Shown here in pieces: positions 426 to 23,316 of a DNA stretch of 64,000 nt. Position numbers and translations under genes: made by a program. The notes beneath the pieces were generated by a model. That model had not been told where the DNA came from. It saw only the letters and a program-made list of their open reading frames with translations, and ran no database searches. The stretch spans positions 119,864 through 183,863 of the forward strand of contig JAKMXF010000328.1 in the NCBI GenBank assembly GCA_024704765.1, read 5' to 3'. Within the stretch, counting starts at the first letter, position 1. Each line of letters begins with the position of its first letter. The stretch comes from Oopsacas minuta (taxonomy: Eukaryota; Animalia; Porifera).

Positions 426-1770
426 CAGGGTGTCTCAAAATTACTGCGGTGTTGTAAAATACTCAATAACTTTAGAATTAATACACTTTGATAAAGTTCT
501 ATTTGCCAATATATTCCCCTGACAATTCTATACATTTCTGAACGCGCATTGGCATCCCTAAGTACAATCTTTCTATAATATCAGGGTCGATTGATGCCCA
601 AGCATTTTTTAGCATCTTTTCCAAATCATTAACGTTGACAGCAGGCTTCATCTTGTCAATCCTATCTTGAACGATTGACCAAATATTCTCAATTGGGTTG
701 AGATCCGGAGAGTTGCCTGGCCACTTCTGTTTCTCCCAGAACCCAGGTAAGTTCTGTCTGCACCAGTCTTGAGTCATTCTAGCTGTATGAGCCGGAGCTC
801 CATCCTGCATAGATATCGCTTTGGACATGTCTGGTATCATTTTCCTTTCTAAGATCCCTCTATTTTCATCTGTTCTACGCAACGCTTGAATACATGGCCC
901 TTCTAGAATCTCATCTACATAATATTTCGCATTAATTGTCTCTTTTTGAGGCAATATATGGAGTTTAGAAAGCGCTTGATAGCTCACCATACCCCAAACC
1001 ATCACTTTTGCGGGAAATTTAACAGTTTGGCGGGGAGTTACTTGTGTACCGTCTCTTGCCCATATTCGATCGTTCTGTGGATTCGATGGGTGAAATAACT
1101 CATAGGGAGATTCGTCTGACCAGAGTACACGTTTCCAATCATCCACTGTCCAATTCACCTTATCCATACAGAAGCTTAGTCTGTTTTTCTTATGAAATTC
1201 TGTTAGTAAGGGGGTTTTTGGTCTTTTATAAGGGTGAACTTTAAATCCTTGAGCAAATATCGGTATGCAGTGTCCTTTGAAACTGTATTTCCCATGTTTG
1301 TAAGTTTCTTAGCCCTAGATCTTGTCGACTTGTGTCTCTTGCCCAATGATTTCGCAATAACAATCTTTGAGACTCTGGATAACATTTTCGGACGTCCAGC
1401 ACCCCTCTTATGTTGTAGGCTTTTATGTGCTTTATGTTTGTACCACCATCTTTGTATGGTTGAAACATCTTTTCCAAGAGAGAGAGCAACGGTCTTTTGT
1501 GTTTTTCCACTAAGCAGCATTCCAATGGCCCTGTTACGGACTTCAACTTTCTCCAAACGCATATTCATCTGCTAATAATTCGCCAATACTCTAAGCTAAA
1601 CTCAAAATTCCAAAAATAACTACAACCATCTATGGTATAATGCATATTAATAGTTACTAAGGTTGGCTTATAAAATTCGCACTAGTAAATTGAACCTGTA
1701 TCCGATTACACTCTTCTTATTTCATTATAGTTGATCTAATACAGCACCGGAATAATTTTGAGACACCCTG
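426..1770 (-). mobile_element. Tc1/mariner-superfamily element, DD37E type, frameshifted transposase
   Basis: TA TSDs at 424-425 and 1771-1772. ~31-bp TIR CAGGGTGTCTCAAAATTA(C/T)T(G/C)CGGTG(T/C)TGTA. HTH ORF 1203-1568 and DDE ORF 499-1167 (WSDES, QDGAPAH, 37 residues, PDLNPIE). Confidence 0.93.
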
Positions 1771-3296: not shown

Positions 3297-5063
3297 CACA
3301 GTGGCTCTAAATGGCTATCCGTAGGCTTTAGGGTCTTGGGTACATTTAAAGTGCATAAAATGTAGTTTGTTTCTATGGGTTATTGCATATAACTAGTTGA
3401 TTGAGAGGAAAAATATTTTTGGTATGGCTTCTATTTTTTGAGTTATGATGACGTAATCACAATTTGCAGAAAACATATAAACCAGCGTAAATCTATTTAG
3501 GTTGGAGTTAGGGTTATATAATATATTATTTACTAATGGATTAATCGCTATTTAAAGCAGATTGAACTGATTGAGCATTGTATATGGCTTTTGTTTTTCT
3601 TATGATGACGTAAGCAAATTTTATAGTTACTTTCTGGAAATATCTGTGTTATTCGAGTTATTTAGATATGTGTTCACACTAAATTTATCTACCAAGGGAT
3701 AAAGTGTTTAGATTATCAACCAACGTTCATTTTGCTGTATTATTACTGCAATAGCAATTTTATCGAAGAAAAGAATATAATTGAAATTTTAAATTTGTCA
3801 GTAACATGACCGTTTTGCGTGTTCTTAATAACCAACGGTTAATTTTTCCTTAAATTTTATTTTACTATTGTAGTCTTACTGCGCTCCCAATGTTTCGTCC
3901 TGTAATGGACTGCTCAGTTGTCTCGCCTTTTCCGCAATACACATCAGATGGATCAGTGTTAATTAACGTTTACTCCTTTGCGAGTCGCTTTTCCATTATC
4001 TGGGCTCTCCATAATTGGATTGCGTAGCCTGAATAGCTTCGGACAGAGGTCCCACAAAGTTCGATGTACCTGCCTTTGAGCGCTTCGAAAACTATTTGTA
4101 TGGAAGTTGAAGAATGAAGGCGAGACGTTACTCAAATATTTAACGAATTAAATAATATGTCTTAATCGTTAGTCTGGTGAAGCAAATTTGTGCTTTTCAG
4201 CCTGCCTGTATGTCCGATTCCTCTACATTGCTTACACTCAAGGACATTACTAAACCTATCAGAACTGGACTGATATTACGCTTACTGGCAGTATCACGTC
4301 AAGAAATTCAATTCGTTGATTCTTCTCCGAATTTAGGAGAATTCGCCATCTGAAAGATCAAATATCTGTATGAGGGAATCGACAACTGTTCTGATTGATG
4401 GTTGAGATAGAAAAAATCAAGTGCATCATGGTTGTTCATTTAGAATTTGAAATAATTGCTAGAAATTTCGTAGATAAAGTAGTTTATTATGAATTGCTTG
4501 AATTCTGAAATTCTTAAATTAACTGGTCGCTCATTTTAAAATGCTTGGTGTTCATTTGGAGGATGTTGTGGGAGGCCGGATTTAGTTCAAATTATAGATA
4601 ATATTTTAACAAATCACCCTAAAACTTGAAATTACCTGGCCATAACTAGCCACTGTGAGTTTGAGGTGTAATTAGACCAAGGTAATATGTGTCCAGACAC
4701 ATTATGTAACGTCAAAATTATCTGAACCATGGAGGAAATATTCAAAGTGAAATGCTTAGCTCTTATCATAATTGTGAAGAGTATATTCTGGACCAATAAT
4801 AGGTTAAAACTTTGAGCTGTCATTCTCATGAGTATCTTTTGATAGCGAGAATTATATGCCTATGTATAAATATATAATAGAGGTGAATAATGAATTCAAT
4901 TATAGCTATCCACTAAGAATGACATTTGATTAAAAAGTAATAGGAAATTTTTCAAGAAAATTATGATTCCCAGGTTTCAGACTATGCTGAATTTAATGAT
5001 AAATTTTCGAAAGCTTATGGGATGATGAAAAGTTGCCCTAAAGCCTATGTTGAAACCACTGTG
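3297..5063. mobile_element. Non-autonomous Transib-like DNA transposon
   Basis: Termini CACAGTGG...CCACTGTG, and both ends carry TAGGCTTTAGGG internally. The 5-bp flanks CAGTG / TGGTG are reconcilable as a CGGTG TSD after CpG decay. No intact ORF. Confidence 0.6.
3887..3951 (-). ncRNA. Degenerate type III hammerhead ribozyme
   Basis: Minus strand GUGU-A / UUG..CAA / CUGAGCA / GUCC-AUUACA-GGAC / GAAA-CAU. Homologous to the 17071-17138 motif, but the core reads CUGAGCA (G8 to C). Confidence 0.7.
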
Positions 5064-7096: not shown

Positions 7097-7515
7097 CGGA
7101 CATATCATTGCGGACGTTTTGTCGCCGGACATTTAGTCTCAGACACTTTGTCTCTAGTTTGTACCTGAGATACATACTTACCTTAGTTTAGTGGAAGGCT
7201 TGCTCATGGTTGTTGTCAGATATCTAACAACCTCAAGTTGCTGGATTCAGTATTTGGAATCGATAAACATACATGCTGAATTGCATCATGATCGTTTCTT
7301 TTTGGCTATTGCTCATTATTGGTCATCACTGGACCAAGTATCTCCTGCCTGCACCATTTTTGTTGGTCATATCTGGTCCCATATAGAGCGTTACAGGACC
7401 TTAATTTCTGCTGCCCAATTTCCCTGCTAAGAATGACCAAGCGACTAATTTTCCAGATGATTAAATGTCCGGCTACGAAAGTCTCCCTCACGAAATGTCC
7501 TACTACGATATGTCC
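7097..7515. mobile_element. MITE-like element with CGGACATATC termini and subterminal (c)ggaca/tgtcc repeats
   Basis: The left end cggacatatc...cggacgttttgtc...cggacattt mirrors the right end aaatgtccgg...aaatgtcc...gatatgtccg. Confidence 0.55.
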
Positions 7516-7706
7516 GCCGGGATAGTATATGCATACTATTCTGGTAGATTTTCAAAGATGTTTTAAATCTCATCGGCATTTAATGATGACATTGCTTTTC
7601 AATTTTCCCATTATGTTTTTGGAATGTAACACTTAATATCGTTGACTTTTTCTAATGTATTTTTAATTTATTTTTAATCTGTGTGATAATTATCTATTTT
7701 TCACTA

Positions 7707-9008
7707 CGAGGGGCGCTCGAAAAGTTTTGCCGTTTGGTATGAAACCATTAATCTGTCGGATATTTTTCCGCATCCATCTTTTCAGACATATTTTATTAAC
7801 CTACTTTGAAACTTTCATTCATTTATCTCTTCTACTTTCATAAATTAGATAATTTTAGTATACATGGCTTTTAAAATTTCTCAATCTTAATCAGATCACA
7901 AAACGTGATATTCGAGCAATGATTTTGATCTTATTCAAACTACAGAAGACAAGAGTAGAAATCTATGAATCTTTACAGGAACATTTCCCGGATCTAGCTC
8001 CTTCTCTAAGTACAGTTGAACGATGGTACAGGGAATTTATTCACGGAAACTTTGTTCTTGAAGATGCCCCCTTGTTCAGGAAGACTGAATATTTCACATA
8101 ATGAAGAAAATGTTAACGAAATGCTAGATCTAATTACTAAAGATACACTTAATACATACGCTCAGTTTATGAAACCGAGTTATCATCGGGACAATTAATA
8201 TCATTTGCACAAAGAGCTTTGTGTCAGGAAGTTGTGTGTCCGATGGATCCCCCATTCTTTGAACTTACAGCAAAAAATATCCCGCATAGGCTTTTGCAAA
8301 ATTATGCTCAAAAGGTTTGCTAATGGAATTCAAGAGCTGTATCTGGGATCCTTACAGGTGATGAAACATGGATATACAATTATGATCCAGAAACAAAGCG
8401 AATGTCAAATGAGTGGGTTGAAGAAATGCCCCACCTCCAACCAAAGTGCGGAGGGCTAGATCTGTTGGGAAACAAATGTGGGCGATTTTTTTCAGATCTA
8501 GTAGGTTTGTCGAAGCTGTTGCTCTCGAGGATAGAAAGACTGTTACCGCCGGCTGGTACACTACAGTGTGCCTACCCAAAGTCATTACAGCAATTGAGTC
8601 ACAGCGGAAGAAGACAGGCATTAGAGGAATTCTTCTTCATCATGATAATGCATCATCGCATTCAGCAATCAGAACTCCTGAGTTTTTGGAAAATTCTGGA
8701 CTCAAAACATTACCTCACCCGCCGTACAGTCCTGATTTAGCCCCTTGCGACTTCTGGTTGTTTCCTAGACTCAAAGATCAATTGCATGGGAGGAAAATTT
8801 CGACTAATGAGGAGTTGAGAGGGGCACTTTTTTCCAAGCGATCGGAGACATACCCATAGAAGAGTGGAAAAAATGTTTTGATAATTGTTTACCAGAATGA
8901 AAAAATGTATAGATTGTCAGGGAGATTTTTTTGATAAAACGTAGTAGTCAATTTTATTATTGCTATCTGATATGTCGGTCAACGTCAAAACTTTTCGAGT
9001 GCCCTTCG
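7707..9008 (+). mobile_element. Mariner (DD34D) element, pseudogenised transposase
   Basis: TA TSDs at 7705-7706 and 9009-9010. 28-bp TIR CGA(G/A)GGGC(G/A)CTCGAAAAGTTTTG(C/A)CGTT. Fragments WIPHSL, TGDETW-like, HHDNASSH-34-YSPDLAPCDFWLF across frameshifted ORFs 7919-8859. Confidence 0.92.
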
Positions 9009-10317
9009 TATTTACTTTAGTATGAGTATATTCATAGCATTGTGTACACTAATGCAATGGTTGTAAAAGAAAGCTTTGGGACTGGGGCTTTTAGATAATG
9101 CAATATTCAAATGTCGAGATTCTATTTTTGCGATATAATTGTTCATTCATTTAGTGGCGAAGTGTGCCGTTATTCTGTTGGGCAAAAAAACGTTCTATAT
9201 CAGGATCTATGAGCGCTGTAAACTTCAGTAAAATCCATTACCGAACCCATATCAAGAAGTATCGTTTGGATTACATTTGGCCTCGAGGGTTTACATTTTA
9301 ATTGTCCCTTTTAGTTATTATGTTGGAGCTCAGAGAATATTTGGTGGTGGGAGCTGGGCCCCAGTTAAACATTCGCAGGTGTATTTCCCCGACTACATGT
9401 ATTGTTGATTTTTTACAATACACATCCAATTTTACACACTAAATTTTTCTGAGACTTTATTTACAATTGAGGACTATATTTTTTATGTATTTATTGTATT
9501 ATTCAGAAACAATTACTTCTTGGAGGAAGTTTTGATTTTTCCAGATATTTAGCTCTCATTTGCCCATTATATTGAACTAATTTTTCACGATTTTTCAATA
9601 ATGGCATTTTAGTTATTATTTATCCAAACTTCGATTTATAGTAGTATGAGGCGTCAGAGAAAATCCGCGATCTCCTTATTCCTCTTGACACTTCTTTATT
9701 GCTCGTTCTGCGATTACTCAGTCCCTGTTCACAGAGTTATTGATATATTGGAAACGGTTACAATTAACCCACAAGTAGATCATACACTCTATACAAACGA
9801 GGCAATAATCACTCAGTTAGGGGGTTGCTTGCAATTTTTAGCTACACTAACTTTTCAGTAATTGTCATTCATTTATTATATTCATTTATCTATAATCAGA
9901 CAATTGGTTGCGTAAATAGAACTTGCGAAATCATTTTACGCCTTCATCACATATTATATCACCGTGTAATCATCGTGTAATATTTTAACTTGAATATTGA
10001 TGACTAGATGTTTTGTTAGAATTTCAGCAAATTCTAGAAGTATTCGAATTGGGATTTAGAATTCTTTTGACTAATGGCAATTATGAAAATCTCAAATACG
10101 TACATTATTATTCTTCATTTGACTAATCTTTGAAATATCCACTGATTACCCTTATTGAGGGTCATTTTTGGTTCCAGAATTTTCACTTAATTGAGGACGG
10201 CATCCATGTAACTTCCATTTTAATATCTATTCAGATGTTCTGTTGCGAAATATTTATTCCGGTGGGACCAAATGTATCATTGTTTTTGGTCAGGCCTGAC
10301 AAAATACTTCAGGCCAA

Positions 10318-11293
10318 TTCGGTCCGGCAGGACTTAATATTTCAGAGATTTTTGTTCTGGCGTTGTGAAAATTTCAGCTAACCAAATTGTTTACTGTTTT
10401 TTGGTCCGTAAACACTAAAGTATTTGGTTTGTTTTTAGTTGGACCTCCTGTCCAACTCCTCTGTACTCCATGATGTATAAAATTGTATATAGCTATACTA
10501 ATTCTACTAAAACACACAAATTCGGATTTATAAACGAATTTATATTATGAATCGAAACTGCCATGCATTTAATTTTCAGCTTATCCATGGGCACATGAGC
10601 CAATTTAGCCTACCTTTGAGAATAGAATGCGTGACATCTCCCTGGTTTTCATGGATAAATATCTCTTGATTGACATGGCGTGTGACCTGCAATGAATGGA
10701 AATGCATTGTGATTAAGAATGTGGAATGCGTAGAAAATGAAAGGCCGTATTATGAAGATTAGCATCTATTTCATAAGATTCTTACTACCTATATTACTGA
10801 AACCAGAGATGTTACCTTAGATTCTTCTGTGCTGGGATTCATACAAGGGGATGGGAAACGAGGATTCCCCTTAAAATTCCATGTAGATGATTACTGTGAG
10901 CATTGTCCAATATCAATAATAACTTATTTCTGAAAATGTACGGTGTAAGATTTATCGCAACTAATAGAATTACTCAGAACTGACTTTCATTCACCACCAC
11001 TGCCTTAGTGATAAAATTCCACTGTCCATCTTGTATATGTAGATGCAAAATAGATAATAAATTACTTAAGTAACTCTTTGTTAACTCAAGTTCCAATCCA
11101 TATACTAACTGGATATATATATCATTACAAATCCGAATTTGTCTGTCTTAGTACCATTTAGTATACCTATATACAATTTTTCATAACATGGAAAACAGAG
11201 GGGTTGGAGAGGAGGTCTAACTAAATAGCAAACCAAATACTTCAGTGTTTTACGGACCAAAAATATTGATATCTTTGGTCTGTCGGACCGAAC
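10318..11293. repeat. Imperfect inverted-repeat pair (10318-10450 vs 11205-11293), probable foldback/MITE relic
   Basis: ggtccgtaaacactaaagtatttggtttg...ggacctcc at ~10395-10448 is the reverse complement of ~11205-11262. ttcggtccg / cggaccgaa occur at the outer edges. Confidence 0.5.
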
Positions 11294-11299
11294 TTTTTT

Positions 11300-12460
11300 C
11301 ACACAGTTGTTATGAATATCGCTTAATTCTTCTTGCAATTCTAGTGAAACTTCATCAATGTCCATGCTGAGTGGTTCAATAATCAAATCAGGTGTTTTAA
11401 GTTCGAGCAAATCTGTAAATGTTTTAAATAACTTTAGCTCCCCAATATAGGCGCTAACAACGGTTTTGCATTTTACTAGACTGAACATATTCTGTTTTAG
11501 TTGCACGTTCATTGCGTAAACTTCTCATCTAAGTCAGTCAAGTAAGCGATCAGATTTTGTTGCCACAACAAGCTGTATTAACTTCAGATTGTCTTCTTGT
11601 AAGAATTCCACATTTTTGTCAAATAGGCTGTAAAACCAGTAGGGACATTTTCTTTTTGAAAACCATCTCACTTCGGCGTCTAGAAGCAGACGTTAGAATT
11701 CCATTTCCTTGGTATGACAGAGTTTGACAGAAATATTCTGTCCTTGAGTACAAAACACTGAATTTTATTGGACGATGTGTAAAGAGTTGTGTAAACGAAG
11801 ACTAAAGTGTTTTGCTACTAAATGTTCTCTATGAGCGACGCAGCACACTGCGAAGACTTCAGTTAAAGCATTTTTCAAGTATGAAATAAGTACGCGATGT
11901 CGGCCGACCATGTCAGGAGCCCCATCGGTGGCGCACCCAATATGCTACACAAGTGTATTTCTTTTTCTTGCAAGTAATTATCCACCATATTGAAATTGGA
12001 TTCACCTTTTGTATCAGTTATAAGAAGTCTAGCATAGAACATTTCTTCAACCAAATTATCTTCCTGAATAAAGCTGACATATGCTAAGAACAGTGCTTCG
12101 TTATCTGGCATGGTGTATTCATCGATTTGAAGCGAAAGTTCCACCGTATTAAGAAATTCGCAGATTGTTTTTCGATCCCATTAGCCATCAAATTTATTCG
12201 CTTCGTCACAGTCTCATTACTTAATGGAATTAACTTTTTCAGACTATGGTCGTCCAGATGCATGATAGTAATAACTGCTTTCTGGATAGCAGGCAGGATA
12301 AGTTGTTCTTTATGGTATGTTGCTCTCCAGCTTTAGCAATTAGTAGTGAAATGATATACGATGTAATCATGCCATCATAGTTGTGAGTCCACTTTTCGGA
12401 AAATGCTGCCCATGGTTTTGCGATTCATTCTCAAGTTAATTACCAATTCAACATCTCTAT
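11300..12460 (-). pseudogene. hAT Buster/SPIN-type transposase relic
   Basis: Frameshifted fragments SLSNETVTKRI, SLQIDE, EEMFYARLL-TDTKGE, CVAHREHLVAK, LLLDAEVRW, MNVQLKQ, typical of Buster-family (ZBED5/SCAND3-like) transposases. TIRs not found. Confidence 0.8.
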
Positions 12461-13086
12461 CTGTCTTGTCACTGTTACGCGATTTCAAATTATCGATCAT
12501 TATCGATGGCTTCATTCCTTAATTAGAAAAACTTGTTCGCAAACGAGGACAATGGGGGTTATTCATTGCTTGGAGACTTAATAAAGCCATATTATATATA
12601 ATCCGCTTTATATTGTCTACATTTTTTACTCTTCATTTTCTGTGAATGAGTATTTAATAGTTTGTATTTGGTTTCGAATATACTTATTCATATTAGTCAT
12701 GATTCTGGAAGAAAATCACATGGCCATTGTACATTTTCTTCAGAATATTACACAAGAATTACAAAATAATTATTAACCAGCACAGTCTATAGATAATGTC
12801 AAATAACAAGACACTCTACAATTGTAGGGGAGTGTCCTCAACATACACTGCCACCTCGATTATTCGAATTTTGATTACCCTAACGCTACAATTATCAGAA
12901 TTTGGTCCCAGGTCCCAGTTCCTATTCCACTATGTATATACTAGCTTGATTATCGGACATTTGATTAATCGGAAGGTTTTGACAGGTACCAACTAGTTTG
13001 TGTAATCTTTTAATACTAAAGCAAGAACAAGGCTCGAAGACTTGTGAATAAATATTTATCACAACTTTCTAGATGGACATTTTGAA

Positions 13087-15892: not shown

Positions 15893-17070
15893 GTAATCCC
15901 TTGACAATTACCTTATTTATTTTTGTGATCTATTTCTATTCCAATACTATTGTAGACCTGTTGCGTAGGATTTTGACCCGTAATACAAAATCCTAATAGC
16001 ATATCCATGGTGCAGGTCAAAATCCTACGATGTAATATATGCGTAGGATTTTGACCCGCATCAAAATGTATTACACTAATTACAGCCGTAGGATTTTGAC
16101 CTGCATATAATGTATTATTGTCGTAGGATTTTGACCCTAAAGTAATCTTACTTCTCTGTCATTTGACTTTTTCGATTTCCATACACTTTCATTACGTAAT
16201 TACCACTAAATGTACATAATGTAATTCAACTTTAGACTTGCCATACGTATACGTGACTGAATAAACAAGTCAATTTAGAGTTGGATTCTAGAAAGTAGTG
16301 AATTTGTTTGATAACATGTAAACTATGTTCCCACTACATATAACAAATTTACAATATGTATAATTATCCAAAATGCCAAATATAGACAGGTGTATATAAA
16401 TATTTTATGATAATATTACTTGGACAGAAGGTGGTAGGTATTTGATAATTGTATTTAATAACTCATAATAAATAATATAATTTAACATGTCAATCTATAT
16501 ATTGCAATATATTCTATCAAATAATAAAAATATTACAAGCATTAGCATGATAATGAATATTCTGAATATCTTAAGTACGAATTGTAGGCGATTTCATCAT
16601 TGCCCATTTCTCTATACTTCCTGACATGCTTTAAGGAATAACCACTGAAATATGTTCATCTAGTGGACAAGCGTAGACTATGCATTTGTTAAGGGAGTCT
16701 TGGTATAATGTTGATACACATATAGAGTTGAGGTGAAAACCGCGAGCCTCTGGCACGCTGCATACTCCTGGAAAACACTAGATTTCTATAAACAAAACAA
16801 GTCAGCTCCGGTGGCCTCCTCCTTCCCCTTACAGCCACCCCCTAACACTAAACGTTTAACGTTAACCTCACCTTGTTTATGTGTGCAGTGTTGGAGCGAG
16901 TTTAATGTGATTGCGATCACACCAAATTTGACTCTAAGCTGCAACATAAACGAATATGTACAATAAATCGTAATTTAACAGACACACGAGGAGCTAACGG
17001 ACCCCGAACGGCCACAGACAAGGAGAAATTAAAAATAAAAAATAGATAAGAAACTCGCTTGTATCTGATT

Positions 17071-17138
17071 CCATGCTGTATTTCGTCTCGGCGTAGACTC
17101 GTCAGTTGCGCTGCCTTTCTCGCAATATACTTAGATGG
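17071..17138 (-). ncRNA. Type III hammerhead ribozyme
   Basis: Minus strand CCAUCU-AA-GUAU-A-UUGCG-(AGAAAGGCAG)-CGCAA-CUGACGA-GUCU-(ACGCCG)-AGAC-GAAA-UAC-AG-C-AUGG. It has a complete CUGANGA/GAAA core, perfect stems I, II and III, and an AUA cleavage triplet (cut between 17126 and 17125). Confidence 0.88.
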
Positions 17139-17310
17139 TAGAGTGATGATATTCGCCACTGGGGATGTGCTGTTGCAGGTCGCGTTTCCATTATCTGGGC
17201 TCACCATGATAGGGATTGCGTTGCCTGAATAACTTCGGGCAGAGGTCCCCACAAGGTTCGATGTACCTTGCCTTTGAGCGCTTTCGAATAATGGAAAGAG
17301 TCGTGAATCG

Positions 17311-20300
17311 CTAAGAATTAGTCAGAAGAGTGCAAGAGGTAGAAACAGTATTGAGTGATCCGATGAAAGTGTCACAGTCCCAAAGTTGGATAATTGGTTC
17401 TCTCATTCCGTCATATTTATAGAATTGCCCGTTTTGGTAAAGGATTGAATAGAAGTGTCTATTACTCAATATGCTTAAGCCAGCAAGTTGGTAGTGAAGT
17501 GTCCGTTGGTTGTGACTGATGGTAAAGTGTTTGTCAATATCACTTGCAAAAATGTCTGGCAATTCGGGTAGATGTCCGATTTCAATTGTTAGCATGACAG
17601 GTATTGACTTGAATTGACCAGATATCCTCTCTAAGACAGCAGTAGTTGATCCACAAGACTTGCATTTAATAGGAACGAGACTTCGATTAACAGATGATTC
17701 CAGGTTTGTAATAACGCCTCCTATATTACTAATCATGGATTGTGTCTCAAGATACTGGTGCATTGGTGGCATTGGAAGATAGTGAAATATTTGTAGTTGC
17801 ACAAATCTTCTGTTCGTAAATATTTGATGATGTCACCCTCTGATCCAAAGAAATCGTAAGATCGTATCAATCCTGAGGAATCATAAATAACTTCAAGCCC
17901 AATTTTAGTAGCAACATATTCTCGAAGTTTCTCAAATTCACAATTAGCAGCCAATTGGAATATGTAGTGGAATTTAGCTTCAACATGTGTACTTCCGATT
18001 AACTTCAGTGAGTCTATGATGGTTGCTTTATTCGAACTAAGAATAGCCAATATATTGTCGATAGAACAGGTGTTAGATTGCACGATGTTGTTATACTCTC
18101 CTCCCCATTTAGGATATGGGATAAGATCTGATGCATTTTGTATAGATTGTTCTGGTATTTCAATGATCTCATGAACTTGCTCAGTCGGGAATATTAACTC
18201 AATTATTACTGGTAATAGAACAGCAATTGGATAGCCAAGATCTTTTCGTGTCTCTTCAAGTATTTCAGTAGGATAGGAGGAACGATATTCTGCGTACCAA
18301 TTATCGGCTGATACAGCAAGTTTCTCCTTAATCTCAAAATTTAGTTCGTTGGGTGGATGGTAAGAATATAGTAAATTCAATGAAGTTAGAGATGCAGCTT
18401 TTGTAGCGAGTTTCTCATGTAGTTGGGTTAAGTATGTGTTATTGACAAGAGCTGATAGTATTCGAGGTTTCAATTGAAGTAGCTCAGAGTCGATATTTTC
18501 ATAGATTGAGTGTTGTTGCGGTGTTTCAAATGTTTCTTCCATGGTATCCAGGTTCAATATATCATCCAAAGAATCTAAATACAAATAAATATGTGAAATG
18601 TAGGATTGCTATTACGTATTAATCGAATCAATACAGAACACAACTAGTTTATGTGTACTTAATCATGGGCTGAGTCAATTAGTTATAGTTCAGTACAATA
18701 TTGTCTCGCTAATGTATTTACCACTAGAAGGGAATTTGCAGGATCTTTTGGGCTTCTTTGATTTGCCTGTCTTCGTTCGAACCTGCCGTTTTTCGTTCAT
18801 CCGAGAATGATATTTTCTTGATAGATGGATAGGTAATTTTGTTGTTTTGCTATCTGGGTCTTTGCGAGCAACTAGGTGGCTTGGTTTAACTTCCTCTATC
18901 GTATATGGTCCCAAATATTTCTTTGCATCTTTTGTTCCTGGGAGTCGCTTGGCTTTCTTTATATTATGTACAAGTACCTCATCTCCTTCCACAAATTCTG
19001 ATCTAAAGTTTACACAATGATTATACAAAGAAAATAATGTGCCAATTACGTACAGTTTGTAACGATGCTAATTATATAACTAAAAGTAAGTGTTTTTGAA
19101 TTTAAGAATTCATATAATTGAGGAAACAATAAATTAGTTCCGATTCAAGATTATTTCATATTTATCGGATTATACAACAGTCAGTGAATTTAATTTAATT
19201 TTAGTAAGAGATGATGTATGAAATTCCAACATGTTACATCACACAAGAATGTGTTTCGTTATTTCTTACCTGTTGTGTTTAACTTTGCTGTCATATGTTT
19301 TCTTTTGAACTTTCTGACCTGCCTTGATGTTTTCAATAGCATTCATTTTGTCAGCTTTACGTGTGGAAGAAAGATTTTCTATCCATTCGTTATCAATTAT
19401 AGGAAAGTCAAATGGGCGTGGTTCGTTTGCATCCATTTGAATATTCTCATCTTCTGATACTTCTGCCTCTGAGATATCAGCTTCGGTTACTAATCCGGGG
19501 TTAGTTGGAGAAGTGATAAGATTGAGAAGGTTAGATGAATCAAAGTCTCTCCCAAACATGAGATAAAAGGGTGTGTAGCCTGTAGAGATTTTGGTTTGAG
19601 TATTTGCTGCTAGTACTGCTGTCTGTAATTTCTCTGTCCATTTAGTGTCCCCTTCAGATTGCATCTTGTTGATTTTTCTATTTGTAAAAGTGTTAAATTA
19701 ATTCAAAGCTATCTAATTATAAACGACGTCTATTAAACGTATGTAAGGCTTTGAATAGAGATATATTTATACTTAGCATCAATACTCACGTTTTCAATAT
19801 TCTGTTGTGTGACTCAACAAGTCCGTTACTTTGTGGGTGGTATGCTGTGGTTCTTCTGGTGTTGACATTTATCTTCTTGTGAAATTCTTGAAATTCCTAT
19901 TTTGGAAGTAAATAAGAGAACGATAACAATCTACTACGCGCATGTATTTAGTCTTGTACAGCAATAGTTAGAAAGATATGACGATTAATAAGTTAAATTT
20001 TCCATCCGAAGGTAGTAGCATTAATTCGGAAATTCTTATTTATTAGTATTTAACATAATTAAAATCCAATTTTCCACACGGTTTCTTAAATATAGCCATC
20101 AGGACGCACAATTTCCTACCAGGGTATATATTGAAGCAATGCGCTGACAATTGACAATGCAACATGTTACGTACGTATATCCAATATAGTAAGTTGTATT
20201 GTGTATCGGGAATAATTTACTTGGTGTATTTACAATTACTAATCTCGAGTATGTAAAAATATGAGTTACCTTGCTTGAGAATTCTGTTCCCTGATCATGT

Positions 20301-21623
20301 TGGAGGATGTTAGGTACAACGAACGAGAGATAAATTTCCTGTAAACAATCCAATATTTCTTTAGAAGTTTTAGTCTTGAGTGGTCGGGCAATTACAAATT
20401 TACTCAGGTAGCACACGATGACAAGAATGTGCTGAAATCCAAGTACAGTGCGAGACATATTGCATATGAGATCAATTCCATAATGACACCATGGTTCTTC
20501 AGGAGGAGGAATAGGTTGAAGCTCTCGTTGTGGCTGAGGAGGTAGAGCAGCAGAGGTTTGACAGTCATGGCAAGTTCGGATCTAGAACGGGAAATGATTT
20601 AATTGTCAGTTTGTAGTCCAGTCTAATGTAATTTGCTACGTTCCAGATGTCCCGCTAAATTAGCATTCCGTCCCGCTTTTTCTTCACTCAGGTTGGCAAA
20701 TATGTTTATGTGAAATACTCCCACTACCTATCCTAATTACTAACTACCGCAAGGGTCATTAGTTGTTAGATACATGGTTGGTTGGTTGTACCGCACAAAT
20801 AGATTTCCATATGATAAAATTGTATACCGGTATACTAAATATCATCAGATCGCACAATATTAATTTTACAATAGCACAAATAAAGCTGTATACAGTAGAA
20901 TAATTACAAGGTGAATAACCTCAAACTATAAAATACATGCTGTTCTCAGACTTAACAACCCCTTTTGCAAATTTCCCTGGATTTTCAAAATTTGTAATCC
21001 AGGGATCCCTGGAGGGTTGGTAAGTCTGTGTTCTCAGCCACATTTTCTTGGAAAATCATGTATGAAAGAAATACGTAATTTAGTAACTCACATAGGATCC
21101 AACATCATTGTATATGCCATTCCAATCATATTTATTTCGGATTCCATCAATGGTAGTATTGATTCCGGGATGAGTGACATTGTGATAGAATCCGATAATG
21201 TTGTCAATTTCTGAGACTAGTGGGATCTCCAAATATTTCACACAGCCATTTTTCTTTCTGAAAATCTACAAGAAATTATTTTAGTTAAACTCAGAGGTTG
21301 TAGGTAGCATTGAGGGGCAGAGGAGTCCCCCTAGCGTTTTCACCCTTCTCATCTCCCTATGGTACGCAAATTTAGTGAGGCAACTACATATCTGCCTCCT
21401 CGCAGATATGTAGTTGCCTCAAGATTTCTAATTATGTCCCGGAAATAAGTATAAATCAAAAATATCATTCAGGATTATACCTTCATTAGCTTATTCTCTT
21501 GAAAGTAAATCCCCTTGCACTTTCTGAGAAACTCTTCTTGCTGTAGCGATCACTCTTGATTTCCGGTGGGATAATATTCGTCTGGAGTTATCCACGAATT
21601 GCTTCATACTTTGTCGCATCCAT
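17311..21623 (-). pseudogene. Ginger transposase-protease gene, 7 exons: 21623-21481, 21265-21092, 20581-20270, 19896-19790, 19677-19270, 19002-18722, 18574-17311 (~900 aa)
   Basis: All six introns are GT-AG with matching phases (0,0,0,2,2,1). H-x3-H...CHDC finger; GIDL / HDQG / NGLVE (DD35E); TGYTPFYLMFGR; LGPY. Lesions: a stop and a 1-nt frameshift in exon 1, and a 1-nt frameshift near 17745. Confidence 0.88.
21376..21421. repeat. Perfect 20-bp inverted repeat with 6-nt loop
   Basis: TGAGGCAACTACATATCTGC-CTCCTC-GCAGATATGTAGTTGCCTCA, inside Ginger intron 1. Confidence 0.95.
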
Positions 21624-23316
21624 AATGAAAAATGTCAAAAGTAAATATAAGTGTTGATGTTGAAATCTAGAAACAAAGTAAGATGTTAGTATGTGCATTT
21701 GGGGAGTCCCACATGTATAAATACGAATACTATGTGACTAGGGATGAAATGTTGATATTACTTGATTTGCAATTGCTACTTGCGGGTCAAAATCCTACGC
21801 AACAGACCTCTCTATAATATTACTAGGGGGACACTGTCCGTTATGAATGAGATGACAACAATTATTCTATTTTTATATGAAATATCTATTTTGTGTATTT
21901 TCTTTAGCTGTTTTGGGCTAATAGTAATTGCTACATCTAAATTTCGGTAAATTCAAACGTTATGTTAGCATTTTTTTTCATTAGCCGGTTATGCCCATGA
22001 ACAGTCTATCTTTTAGTTAACTAGTACCTATCTTTTATTCAAATAGTATAATATATGTTTGGTCTAAAATTTTAATTGTCCATCATTTTGTTAGATGTTT
22101 CTTTTCGAACATGTGTGGCAAAATTATACTCCAATGTGTTTGTAGCGGTTCAGGAAAGTCGCAGTTTGGTGGAGCAAGTAAAACATAATATTTGGAAATT
22201 CTCTTGGTAATGTGGGTATGCATCAGCTTTTCGTATTTGAAGAGCATCAGCTCCAATCAACAAACTAAATTTGATCTTTAACAACAGACCGTAGCCTTCT
22301 CTATATAATTCGTACCATCAACCTCGAATTTTTAGACTAGGGATATAGTGGTGTACTATGAATTATATTAGTATACAGAATAGTTTCATATCGCAGAAAC
22401 AGTACTTTTATACCTAAGTAAATGTATTACAGACATGTAGAATATCATTTCACCTAACTAACAAAGCAAAAAATTGTCAAAATGTATCAATTTCTTTGCT
22501 TAGTAAGCATTATTGGGAGAATATGGCCCGATCTTTGATGAGCTGTAGAACGTAAAGTATCGCATCAAGGATTTCTAAGTTAATGTAACTTGAATATTAC
22601 CATATAGGGATCTATAGATGAAAATGCAATAATCCATTTCGATGTAATATCAAAATATATTACAAGGCATGGGAAATCGAGTATATGCTATAAATCGGTT
22701 ATAGTGAGTTTTGTTATATCATTGAGAGTTTCCGACTTGTAAATACATATTGACAAATTATCACCATCCATGGTGACAACTGTAACTAAAAGGCTGCCAA
22801 CTTAATCATGACAGATTTTTAATATGTTTTTACAAAAGCATCTTAACATCATTTCGAACATATCTTGGAAATCAAAGATGCGATATTTGACGTTCCACAG
22901 CTCATCAAAGATTGGGTCATATTCTCCAAATAATCCTTACTAAGTAAAGAATTTGGTACATTTTGATAATTTTTTGCTTTGTTGGTTTGGTGACATGATA
23001 TTCTACATATATCTGTAATACATTTACTTAGGTATAAAAGTACTGTTTGCGCGATATGGAACCATTCTGTATACTATTATATCCCTGGTACATCTAATGG
23101 TGGGCCTTACATAGCAAAGGCTATGCAATAGAAATACTTTTGACCACAAAATTTTATTGCAGGAGTTTAGTTATATCCAGTGAAATTTATGAGTATCTCA
23201 ATTTCTGTATTCAATTATCTCAACTTAATTTGGATACATGATTATCGGGAAAATCGCTTAGTGGAGATTTGTCCAAATTAAGTTTAAGTATAAGCAAAGC
23301 TATATGGCCAAAACTA

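Follow-up and report, generated by a model that had tools for sequence, protein, structure and literature searches.

To our knowledge, the small self-cleaving ribozymes known from eukaryotic genomes are associated with retroelements, with satellites or with a small number of host genes. Penelope-like elements carry hammerheads, and the R2, RTE and L1Tc retrotransposons carry HDV-like ribozymes. These carriers are retroelements, and their ribozymes are located at the 5' end or in the terminal repeats of an RNA that is reverse transcribed. Ribozymes integral to a DNA transposon occur in Clostridia as IStrons, in which a group I intron is fused to an IS605-type element. The hammerhead that Martick and colleagues reportedly described in 2008 in the 3' UTRs of rodent Clec2 mRNAs is discontinuous, and its cut parts the open reading frame from the poly(A) tail; it is an immobile part of a host gene, interrupted by a long insert and lacking any conserved partner domain.

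Hammerheads of type I are typical of metazoan genomes, and those of type III of plants and infectious circular RNAs (review, PMC7761336). In the plant LTR retrozymes, viroids and viroid-like satellites (RF00008) the type III motifs are paired; they sit in the direct repeats of retroelements that do not code for protein, or in replicons of circular RNA, mainly in plants. Another kind of transposon RNA module is the ENE triple-helix element, known from LTR elements of plants and fungi and from the region behind their transposase genes (Tycowski et al. 2016, summarised in PMC13541005). ENEs are thought to protect the 3' end of the transcript; they clamp the poly(A) tail by U-rich loops and have no ribozyme.

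Here a hammerhead motif of the glass sponge Oopsacas minuta is described, located in a 64,000-nucleotide stretch of genomic DNA (the window; contig JAKMXF010000328.1). The motif has the same core, closed stems I and II, open stem III and NUH site as the retrozyme and viroid motifs but, unlike them, stands alone in a transposase 3' UTR, and its carrier is a DNA transposon of an animal. As in the Penelope-like, R2, RTE and L1Tc elements, the ribozyme is carried by a transposable element and would process its own transcript; the sponge carrier, in contrast, is a cut-and-paste transposon, and its RNA is only a messenger. Location in the 3' UTR of a protein-coding mRNA is shared with Clec2, and integration into a DNA transposon with the IStrons, but the latter are prokaryotic, and their ribozyme, rather than being a small self-cleaver of a transposase 3' UTR, is an intron that splices the element out of host transcripts. 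ENEs are the closest functional precedent (PMC13541005), being structured 3' UTR modules that stand just behind a transposase gene and are common to unrelated transposon families; unlike an ENE, the sponge element has a domain without U-rich loops, followed by a motif predicted to cleave itself. A search of the full-text literature on hammerhead or other self-cleaving ribozymes in Ginger elements, DNA transposons, transposase UTRs, sponges and O. minuta returned no paper describing such ribozymes.

The hammerhead motif, its carrier and the cassette

Ginger1 elements were defined by TGTNR ends, a 4-bp target duplication and a Gypsy-integrase-like transposase (H2C2, DDE) with a C-terminal protease domain and without reverse transcriptase (Bao et al. 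2010, PMC2836005). The carrier in the window, a Ginger1-like cut-and-paste transposon of 5,846 bp on the minus strand (15959-21804), resembles these elements in its TGTTG...CAACA ends with a 26-nt TIR and in its 4-bp target duplication, read in both flanks (15955-15958 and 21805-21808). The duplicated sequence is GACC, in contrast to the published targets CCGG or CCGT (PMC2836005). A transposase exon at 21080-21241 (minus) encodes an integrase H2C2 zinc-binding domain (PF17921, 31.3 bits against a cut-off of 25.5), and an open frame at 20099-20458 (minus) encodes part of the integrase (DDE) core (PF00665, E 3.4e-6, 27.7 bits, below the cut-off of 32.6); both Pfam matches were obtained from separate open frames of the element rather than from a spliced protein. 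The open frames scanned gave no match to a reverse transcriptase domain. The last coding part of the transposase, assigned from open frames and homologues, lies at 17311-18584 (minus) with the stop codon TAG at 17313-17311; no Pfam match was obtained for this C-terminal region. O. minuta proteins at NCBI are 84-95% identical to the window open frame, and at least 41 copies of the Ginger region were found in the 61-Mb O. minuta genome.

A sequence-only reading of the window had proposed a hammerhead on the minus strand, in sense with the Ginger gene and about 170 nt after its stop codon, with a complete core, a 5-bp stem I and a 4-bp stem II. Direct reading confirmed this layout, and the start given there (17138) was found 172 nt downstream of the stop. 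The motif itself is 53 nt long (17078-17130). Its stem III 5' strand GUAU (17130-17127) is followed by H17, an A at 17126, and the cut is predicted at 17126|17125, the same site as given by the earlier reading. Stem I is formed by UUGCG (17125-17121) with CGCAA (17110-17106) and closes a loop 1 of 10 nt (17120-17111). The catalytic core strand CUGACGA (C3 to A9, with C at N7) occupies 17099-17105; stem II, GUCU (17098-17095) with AGAC (17088-17085), includes the pair G10.1-C11.1 and closes a loop 2 of 6 nt (17094-17089). The core strand GAAA (G12, A13, A14, A15.1; 17081-17084) is kept in all intact lineages described below and leads into the stem III 3' strand UAC (17080-17078). All conserved core nucleotides, the A15.1-U16.1 pair, the NUH site and the three helices are present, and since stems I and II are closed by loops with stem III open, the arrangement is that of type III. 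Judged by its sequence, the motif is a complete type III hammerhead, for which self-cleavage is predicted.

Two details of the earlier reading stood in part. The 10-bp stem III, extended through two bulges, is a peculiarity of O. minuta and its lineage, the stem having 4-5 bp in the others. A proposed tertiary contact between GGC of loop 1 and GCC of loop 2 is kept in most lineages, though not in all: GGC is present in every intact lineage and GCC in most, the exceptions being L046, L055 and one family-2 variant, and no covariation of this pairing was seen among the lineages compared.

The motif was evaluated with a type III descriptor that demands the core together with stems I and II of 5 and 4 bp and, past the A-U pair, a further 3 bp. 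It matched once in the whole window, at the 17130-17078 site, and not at all in 40 Mb of Markov sequence simulated from the window dinucleotide content. A scan with Rfam gave Hammerhead_3 (RF00008) at 19 bits, against a gathering score of 48.5 that is the curated cut-off of one model and not a property of the fold; nothing in the window reached gathering scores, and the ENA loci introduced below yielded no hammerhead match at E<=1. Folding energies were marginal. The minimum-energy structure of the isolated 68-mer is not the hammerhead, which lies 1.1 kcal/mol above it, and across intact lineages the hammerhead fold lies 1.1-3.0 kcal/mol above the minimum free energy. The predicted minimum-energy fold of the full cassette contained either stem II alone, which amounts to 4 of the 13 hammerhead pairs, or no hammerhead pair at all; forcing the hammerhead on it costs 2-5.5 kcal/mol. 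Stem III is short and AU-rich, and RNAalifold alone did not recover stems I and III.

The hammerhead forms the last part, the 3' third, of a non-coding cassette of about 215 nt (17293-17078, minus) that starts 17 nt after the Ginger stop codon. A conserved upstream RNA domain of about 145 nt (17150-17293, minus), 89-94% identical across lineages, is joined to the hammerhead by a linker (17131-17149, minus) that varies in length and sequence between lineages. Indels of 3, 5 and 14 nt between lineages rule out that the domain is coding. Energy models gave the same helices in five lineages, namely a hairpin of 7 bp, a closing helix (GGGGA/UCCCC) and one more helix, which encloses a long, irregular hairpin. 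Under this model 89.9% of the alignment cells are paired, and one pair covaries (columns 74/123; A-U, G-C, G-U). The fold is taken as a working model only, because a single pair covaries and the alignment includes the sequence from which the structure was derived. No name for the domain came from Rfam, whether the window, the region or the ENA loci were scanned. The genome contains 75 occurrences of the central 24-mer of the domain and none of the control; in IMG/VR the 24-mer had 0 matches. Three matches of this 24-mer in JGI metagenome and GTDB genomes trace to one bacterial coding sequence without flanking similarity and were discarded as chance. The domain also contains CGCAAU (17215-17220, minus), kept in all lineages, which is complementary to AUUGCG, that is, H17 together with the stem I 5' strand (17126-17121); such a competitor pairing may be able to hold the ribozyme off.

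Conservation in other lineages and in a second transposon family

Homologues were sought in ENA assemblies with the C-terminal open frame of the window, which matched proteins 41-64% identical; ten of their loci, from four assemblies (ERZ25069837, ERZ25072730, ERZ25071281, ERZ25072740), were read. The cassette was found directly after the gene in all ten, at a distance of 8-56 nt from the stop codon in most lineages. The last coding exon is 63-74% identical to the window copy, the upstream domain 89-94%, the hammerhead 81-95% and the 200 nt after the hammerhead only 55-64%. By these values the non-coding cassette is held far more tightly than the protein. The borders of conservation at the cassette edges are sharp: the shared unit begins a few bases after the stop codon, and conservation ends exactly with the last stem III nucleotide of the hammerhead.

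Intact hammerheads were present in seven of the ten ENA loci, the other three having G12 changed or a deletion. Among the intact lineages, changes were confined to N7, loop 2, parts of loop 1 and two stem pairs with compensation. All four nucleotides (C, G, A and U) occur at N7 across families; the pair 10.4/11.4 is U-A, C-G or U-G, and the pair 16.2/15.2 is A-U, G-C or G-U. Eleven core positions are invariant in the intact lineages and in the consensus of the second family described below, and the chance of sparing all 11 is about 0.02 if 14 of the 53 columns vary at random. In the hammerhead alignment 92.7% of the cells are paired, compared with 21-55% when the partners are slid. Covariation amounts to the two pairs changed on both sides and is thin because the sequence is so conserved. 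As read from this alignment, the variation is located where hammerheads tolerate change.

Within O. minuta, the diverged copies L031-L037 (77-88% identical) carry core-killing changes, some of them common to several copies, and in young Ginger copies the motif decays at random, as expected of inserted copies. Since cores are intact in the lineages from other assemblies, the diverged copies are regarded as decayed single insertions. A chance look-alike, intact only in a young subfamily, was rejected for the same reason.

On sequence comparison, at least one further TIR family carries the cassette too and has probably gained it by transfer. The window contains a second copy at 3881-4093 (minus) in an element of 1.77 kb (3297-5063, minus; termini CACAGTGG...CCACTGTG), a deletion derivative of this family 2. 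The hammerhead of this copy (3942-3890) has a G8-to-C change. Window positions 17173-17288 match 3978-4089 at 88%, and the cassette is the sole similarity of family 2, with its CACAGTG ends, to the Ginger element; the termini of the two differ. At least 28 cassette-bearing copies of family 2 were found in the genome, the longer versions having 1.4-5.1 kb of extra sequence between the 5' part and the cassette. Other copies have the core CUGAGGA or CUGAAGA, stem II GUCC/GGAC or GUCU/GGAC, the same stem I as Ginger and a GUGUA cleavage site, so the family-2 consensus is an intact hammerhead. RAG1-core matches were absent from the interior of the two longest copies, and one was found inside a third (C355). 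The names "Mutator-like" and "Transib-like" would have the CACAGTG termini as their only basis. Deletion derivatives of the Ginger family and of family 2 both retain the cassette.

The genome census was based on coordinates and short matched strings from pattern searches. A core-plus-stem II pattern gave 38 matches, against 0 for the reversed control, and a covariance model built from nine hammerheads found at least 102 sites at E<=0.01 in the 61-Mb genome. Ten pattern matches form a third hammerhead group with the core CUGAUGA, stem II GUCC/GGAC and a 5-nt loop, and with no 24-mer of the upstream domain nearby. They are located in the genome (G000) at C8:110988, C8:27188, C9:98591, C10:51586, C177:77798, C296:8428, C303:330762, C332:337713, C338:30020 and C341:22079. 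Eight of the ten also match the covariance model (six full-length at 31.5 bits, C296 at 37.1 and C9 at 26.9). Further, unclassified matches to the model score 39-43 bits, for example C352:77114, C72:12529 and C277:481054.

Transcription and the proposed role of the cassette

Transcript data consisted of four runs from one sample, available as assembled contigs of unstated type, which cannot show RNA ends. Run X4 has the appearance of RNA. Blocks conserved between assemblies are covered deeply and the sequence between these blocks thinly, and the joints of the run at 19003-19269 and 20582-21091 have CT..AC ends, which correspond to GT..AG on the gene strand and match exon borders inferred independently from conservation. 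If X4 is RNA, this depth pattern and these joints indicate that the Ginger element is transcribed and spliced. A further joint (16785/16872) defines an 86-nt GT..AG intron with good splice sites in the 3' UTR (16786-16871, minus), about 250 nt downstream of the hammerhead. The intron holds a hairpin GUGGCU...GGAGGAGGCCAC; intron and hairpin are kept in L048 and L058, and in L047 the hairpin sequence alone was found. X4 depth is about 7,400-9,600 downstream of the cut, compared with about 10,000 upstream, with no obvious break, and remains similar until about 16500, contig depth being a poor measure of such a difference. Contigs bridge the cut site (X1, record 2). These data suggest that, beyond the ribozyme, the primary transcript continues for about 600 nt and undergoes splicing. 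The ribozyme would thus be internal to the 3' UTR and not at its end, since the X4 transcript continues and splices beyond it.

The explanation we prefer, and consider probable, is that a genuine type III hammerhead closes a cis-acting cassette of about 215 nt in the 3' UTRs of sponge Ginger1-like elements and cuts its own transcript, with a 3'-end module as the preferred role. The order of the cassette would be that of the conserved structured domain, the variable linker and the hammerhead, which would cut the transposase transcript at 17126|17125, some 185 nt past its stop codon. The 5' product would consist of the open reading frame, the domain and a few extra bases, ending in a 2',3'-cyclic phosphate. 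Nearly the whole of a type III hammerhead stays on the 3' product, which would here start with a 5'-OH and comprise the ribozyme body, the remaining 3' UTR of about 600 nt with its intron, and the usual transcript 3' end. In this way the ribozyme could set a 3' end independent of host signals, and the domain, left at the new end, could protect or direct the transposase mRNA. The 3'-end module is favoured because the domain is the best conserved part, because it would come to lie at the new 3' end, and because domain and ribozyme together were taken up by an unrelated family. A bolder version, which we hold only tentatively, is that of a portable, poly(A)-independent module that removes the rest of the 3' UTR while its domain stabilises or routes the message, and that has passed from one DNA transposon superfamily of glass sponges to another, unrelated one. 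Such a module would remove the intron, which could mark the message for decay, and also the repeat-bearing tail.

The main alternative for the same cut, which is less likely, gives it a negative role. The cut would detach the downstream UTR and tail and keep transposase low, a self-limitation comparable to that by the Clec2 hammerhead, with the domain only aiding or tuning the folding. The apparently internal position of the ribozyme fits this well, as a cut there would remove the normal 3' end, and pairing of the domain CGCAAU (17220-17215) with H17 and the stem I 5' strand would allow a cleavage-off conformer. A helper role alone, however, makes it hard to explain that the domain is conserved above the ribozyme (89-94% versus 81-95%), and an unrelated transposon family would hardly be expected to gain and retain a device whose sole effect is to lower expression. 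We think it improbable that the hammerhead-like part does not cleave in vivo and that the cassette is conserved for another reason, as a protein-binding RNA element or as a DNA-level site for transposition or transcription. The low Rfam score, the marginal fold energetics and the contigs across the cut site would all agree with this, and high conservation alone could reflect another function; retention of the cassette by deletion derivatives of both families would also fit a DNA-level cis requirement. Against it, the variation follows hammerhead rules, with free N7 and loop 2, compensated pairs 10.4/11.4 and 16.2/15.2 and an invariant core; conservation stops exactly at the last stem III nucleotide, and at least one further hammerhead group of the same architecture exists in the genome without the domain.

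Least likely of all, and in our opinion very improbable, is an independent small mobile RNA element (retrozyme-like, SINE-like or a circRNA parasite) inserted into transposons. The presence of the cassette in two unrelated TIR families could be so explained, as could the 11 of the 75 domain-pattern matches that fall outside the two family lists, but the searches behind these lists scored 40 candidates, and the 11 may be further family copies. In addition, each element has one hammerhead, without flanking direct repeats or target duplication, and the cassette keeps the same position, 8-56 nt after the stop codon, in most lineages, although the proteins are 41-64% identical. Two hammerheads in direct repeats, the mark of a retrozyme, were not seen; no direct repeat of the motif exists within the element. 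The sequence-only reading had left two origins side by side, a native part of the Ginger 3' UTR and a retrozyme or circRNA parasite riding inside the transposon. The former is favoured, as the unit stands at the same place in every readable Ginger copy (at least 41 here and 10 of 10 loci elsewhere), and the latter is not supported in view of the single ribozyme per element, the lack of flanking direct repeats and the fixed position.

If the cassette cuts as in our preferred explanation, DNA transposons too would process their messengers by a ribozyme, and a compact natural 3'-end cassette of RNA domain plus ribozyme would be at hand to study and possibly to use. In addition, the cassette clearly marks the exchange of modules among transposon superfamilies of an animal lineage that branched early.

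Other repeats and blocks of the element and the window

Downstream of the ribozyme no second conserved gene was found; what the lineages share there are tandem and subterminal repeats, the TIR and two short non-coding blocks. One short block, ..GUCYGUG..GUUCGGGGUCCGUU.., is located about 60 nt after the hammerhead (window about 16990-17022, minus) and is kept in O. minuta, L046, L048 and L058. Close to each end of the Ginger element (window 15964-16137 and 21781-21799) lies a 15-nt subterminal repeat, CGTAGGATTTTGACC, present in both orientations. Repeat and TIR are conserved in the other assemblies, and L048 has long tandem arrays. Positions 8616-8963 of L046 form a long near-perfect hairpin that scored below threshold on plant microRNA models and is probably a small inverted-repeat element adjoining the Ginger copy.

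Elsewhere in the window, a 1.3-kb dispersed repeat (7705-9011) has at least 40 genome copies at 90-94% identity. Remnants of hAT-like transposase (..TDGAP..-type motif) were seen in broken frames at 11100-12500 (minus) and, separately, a Tc1/mariner-like open frame of 269 aa at 502-1308 (minus).
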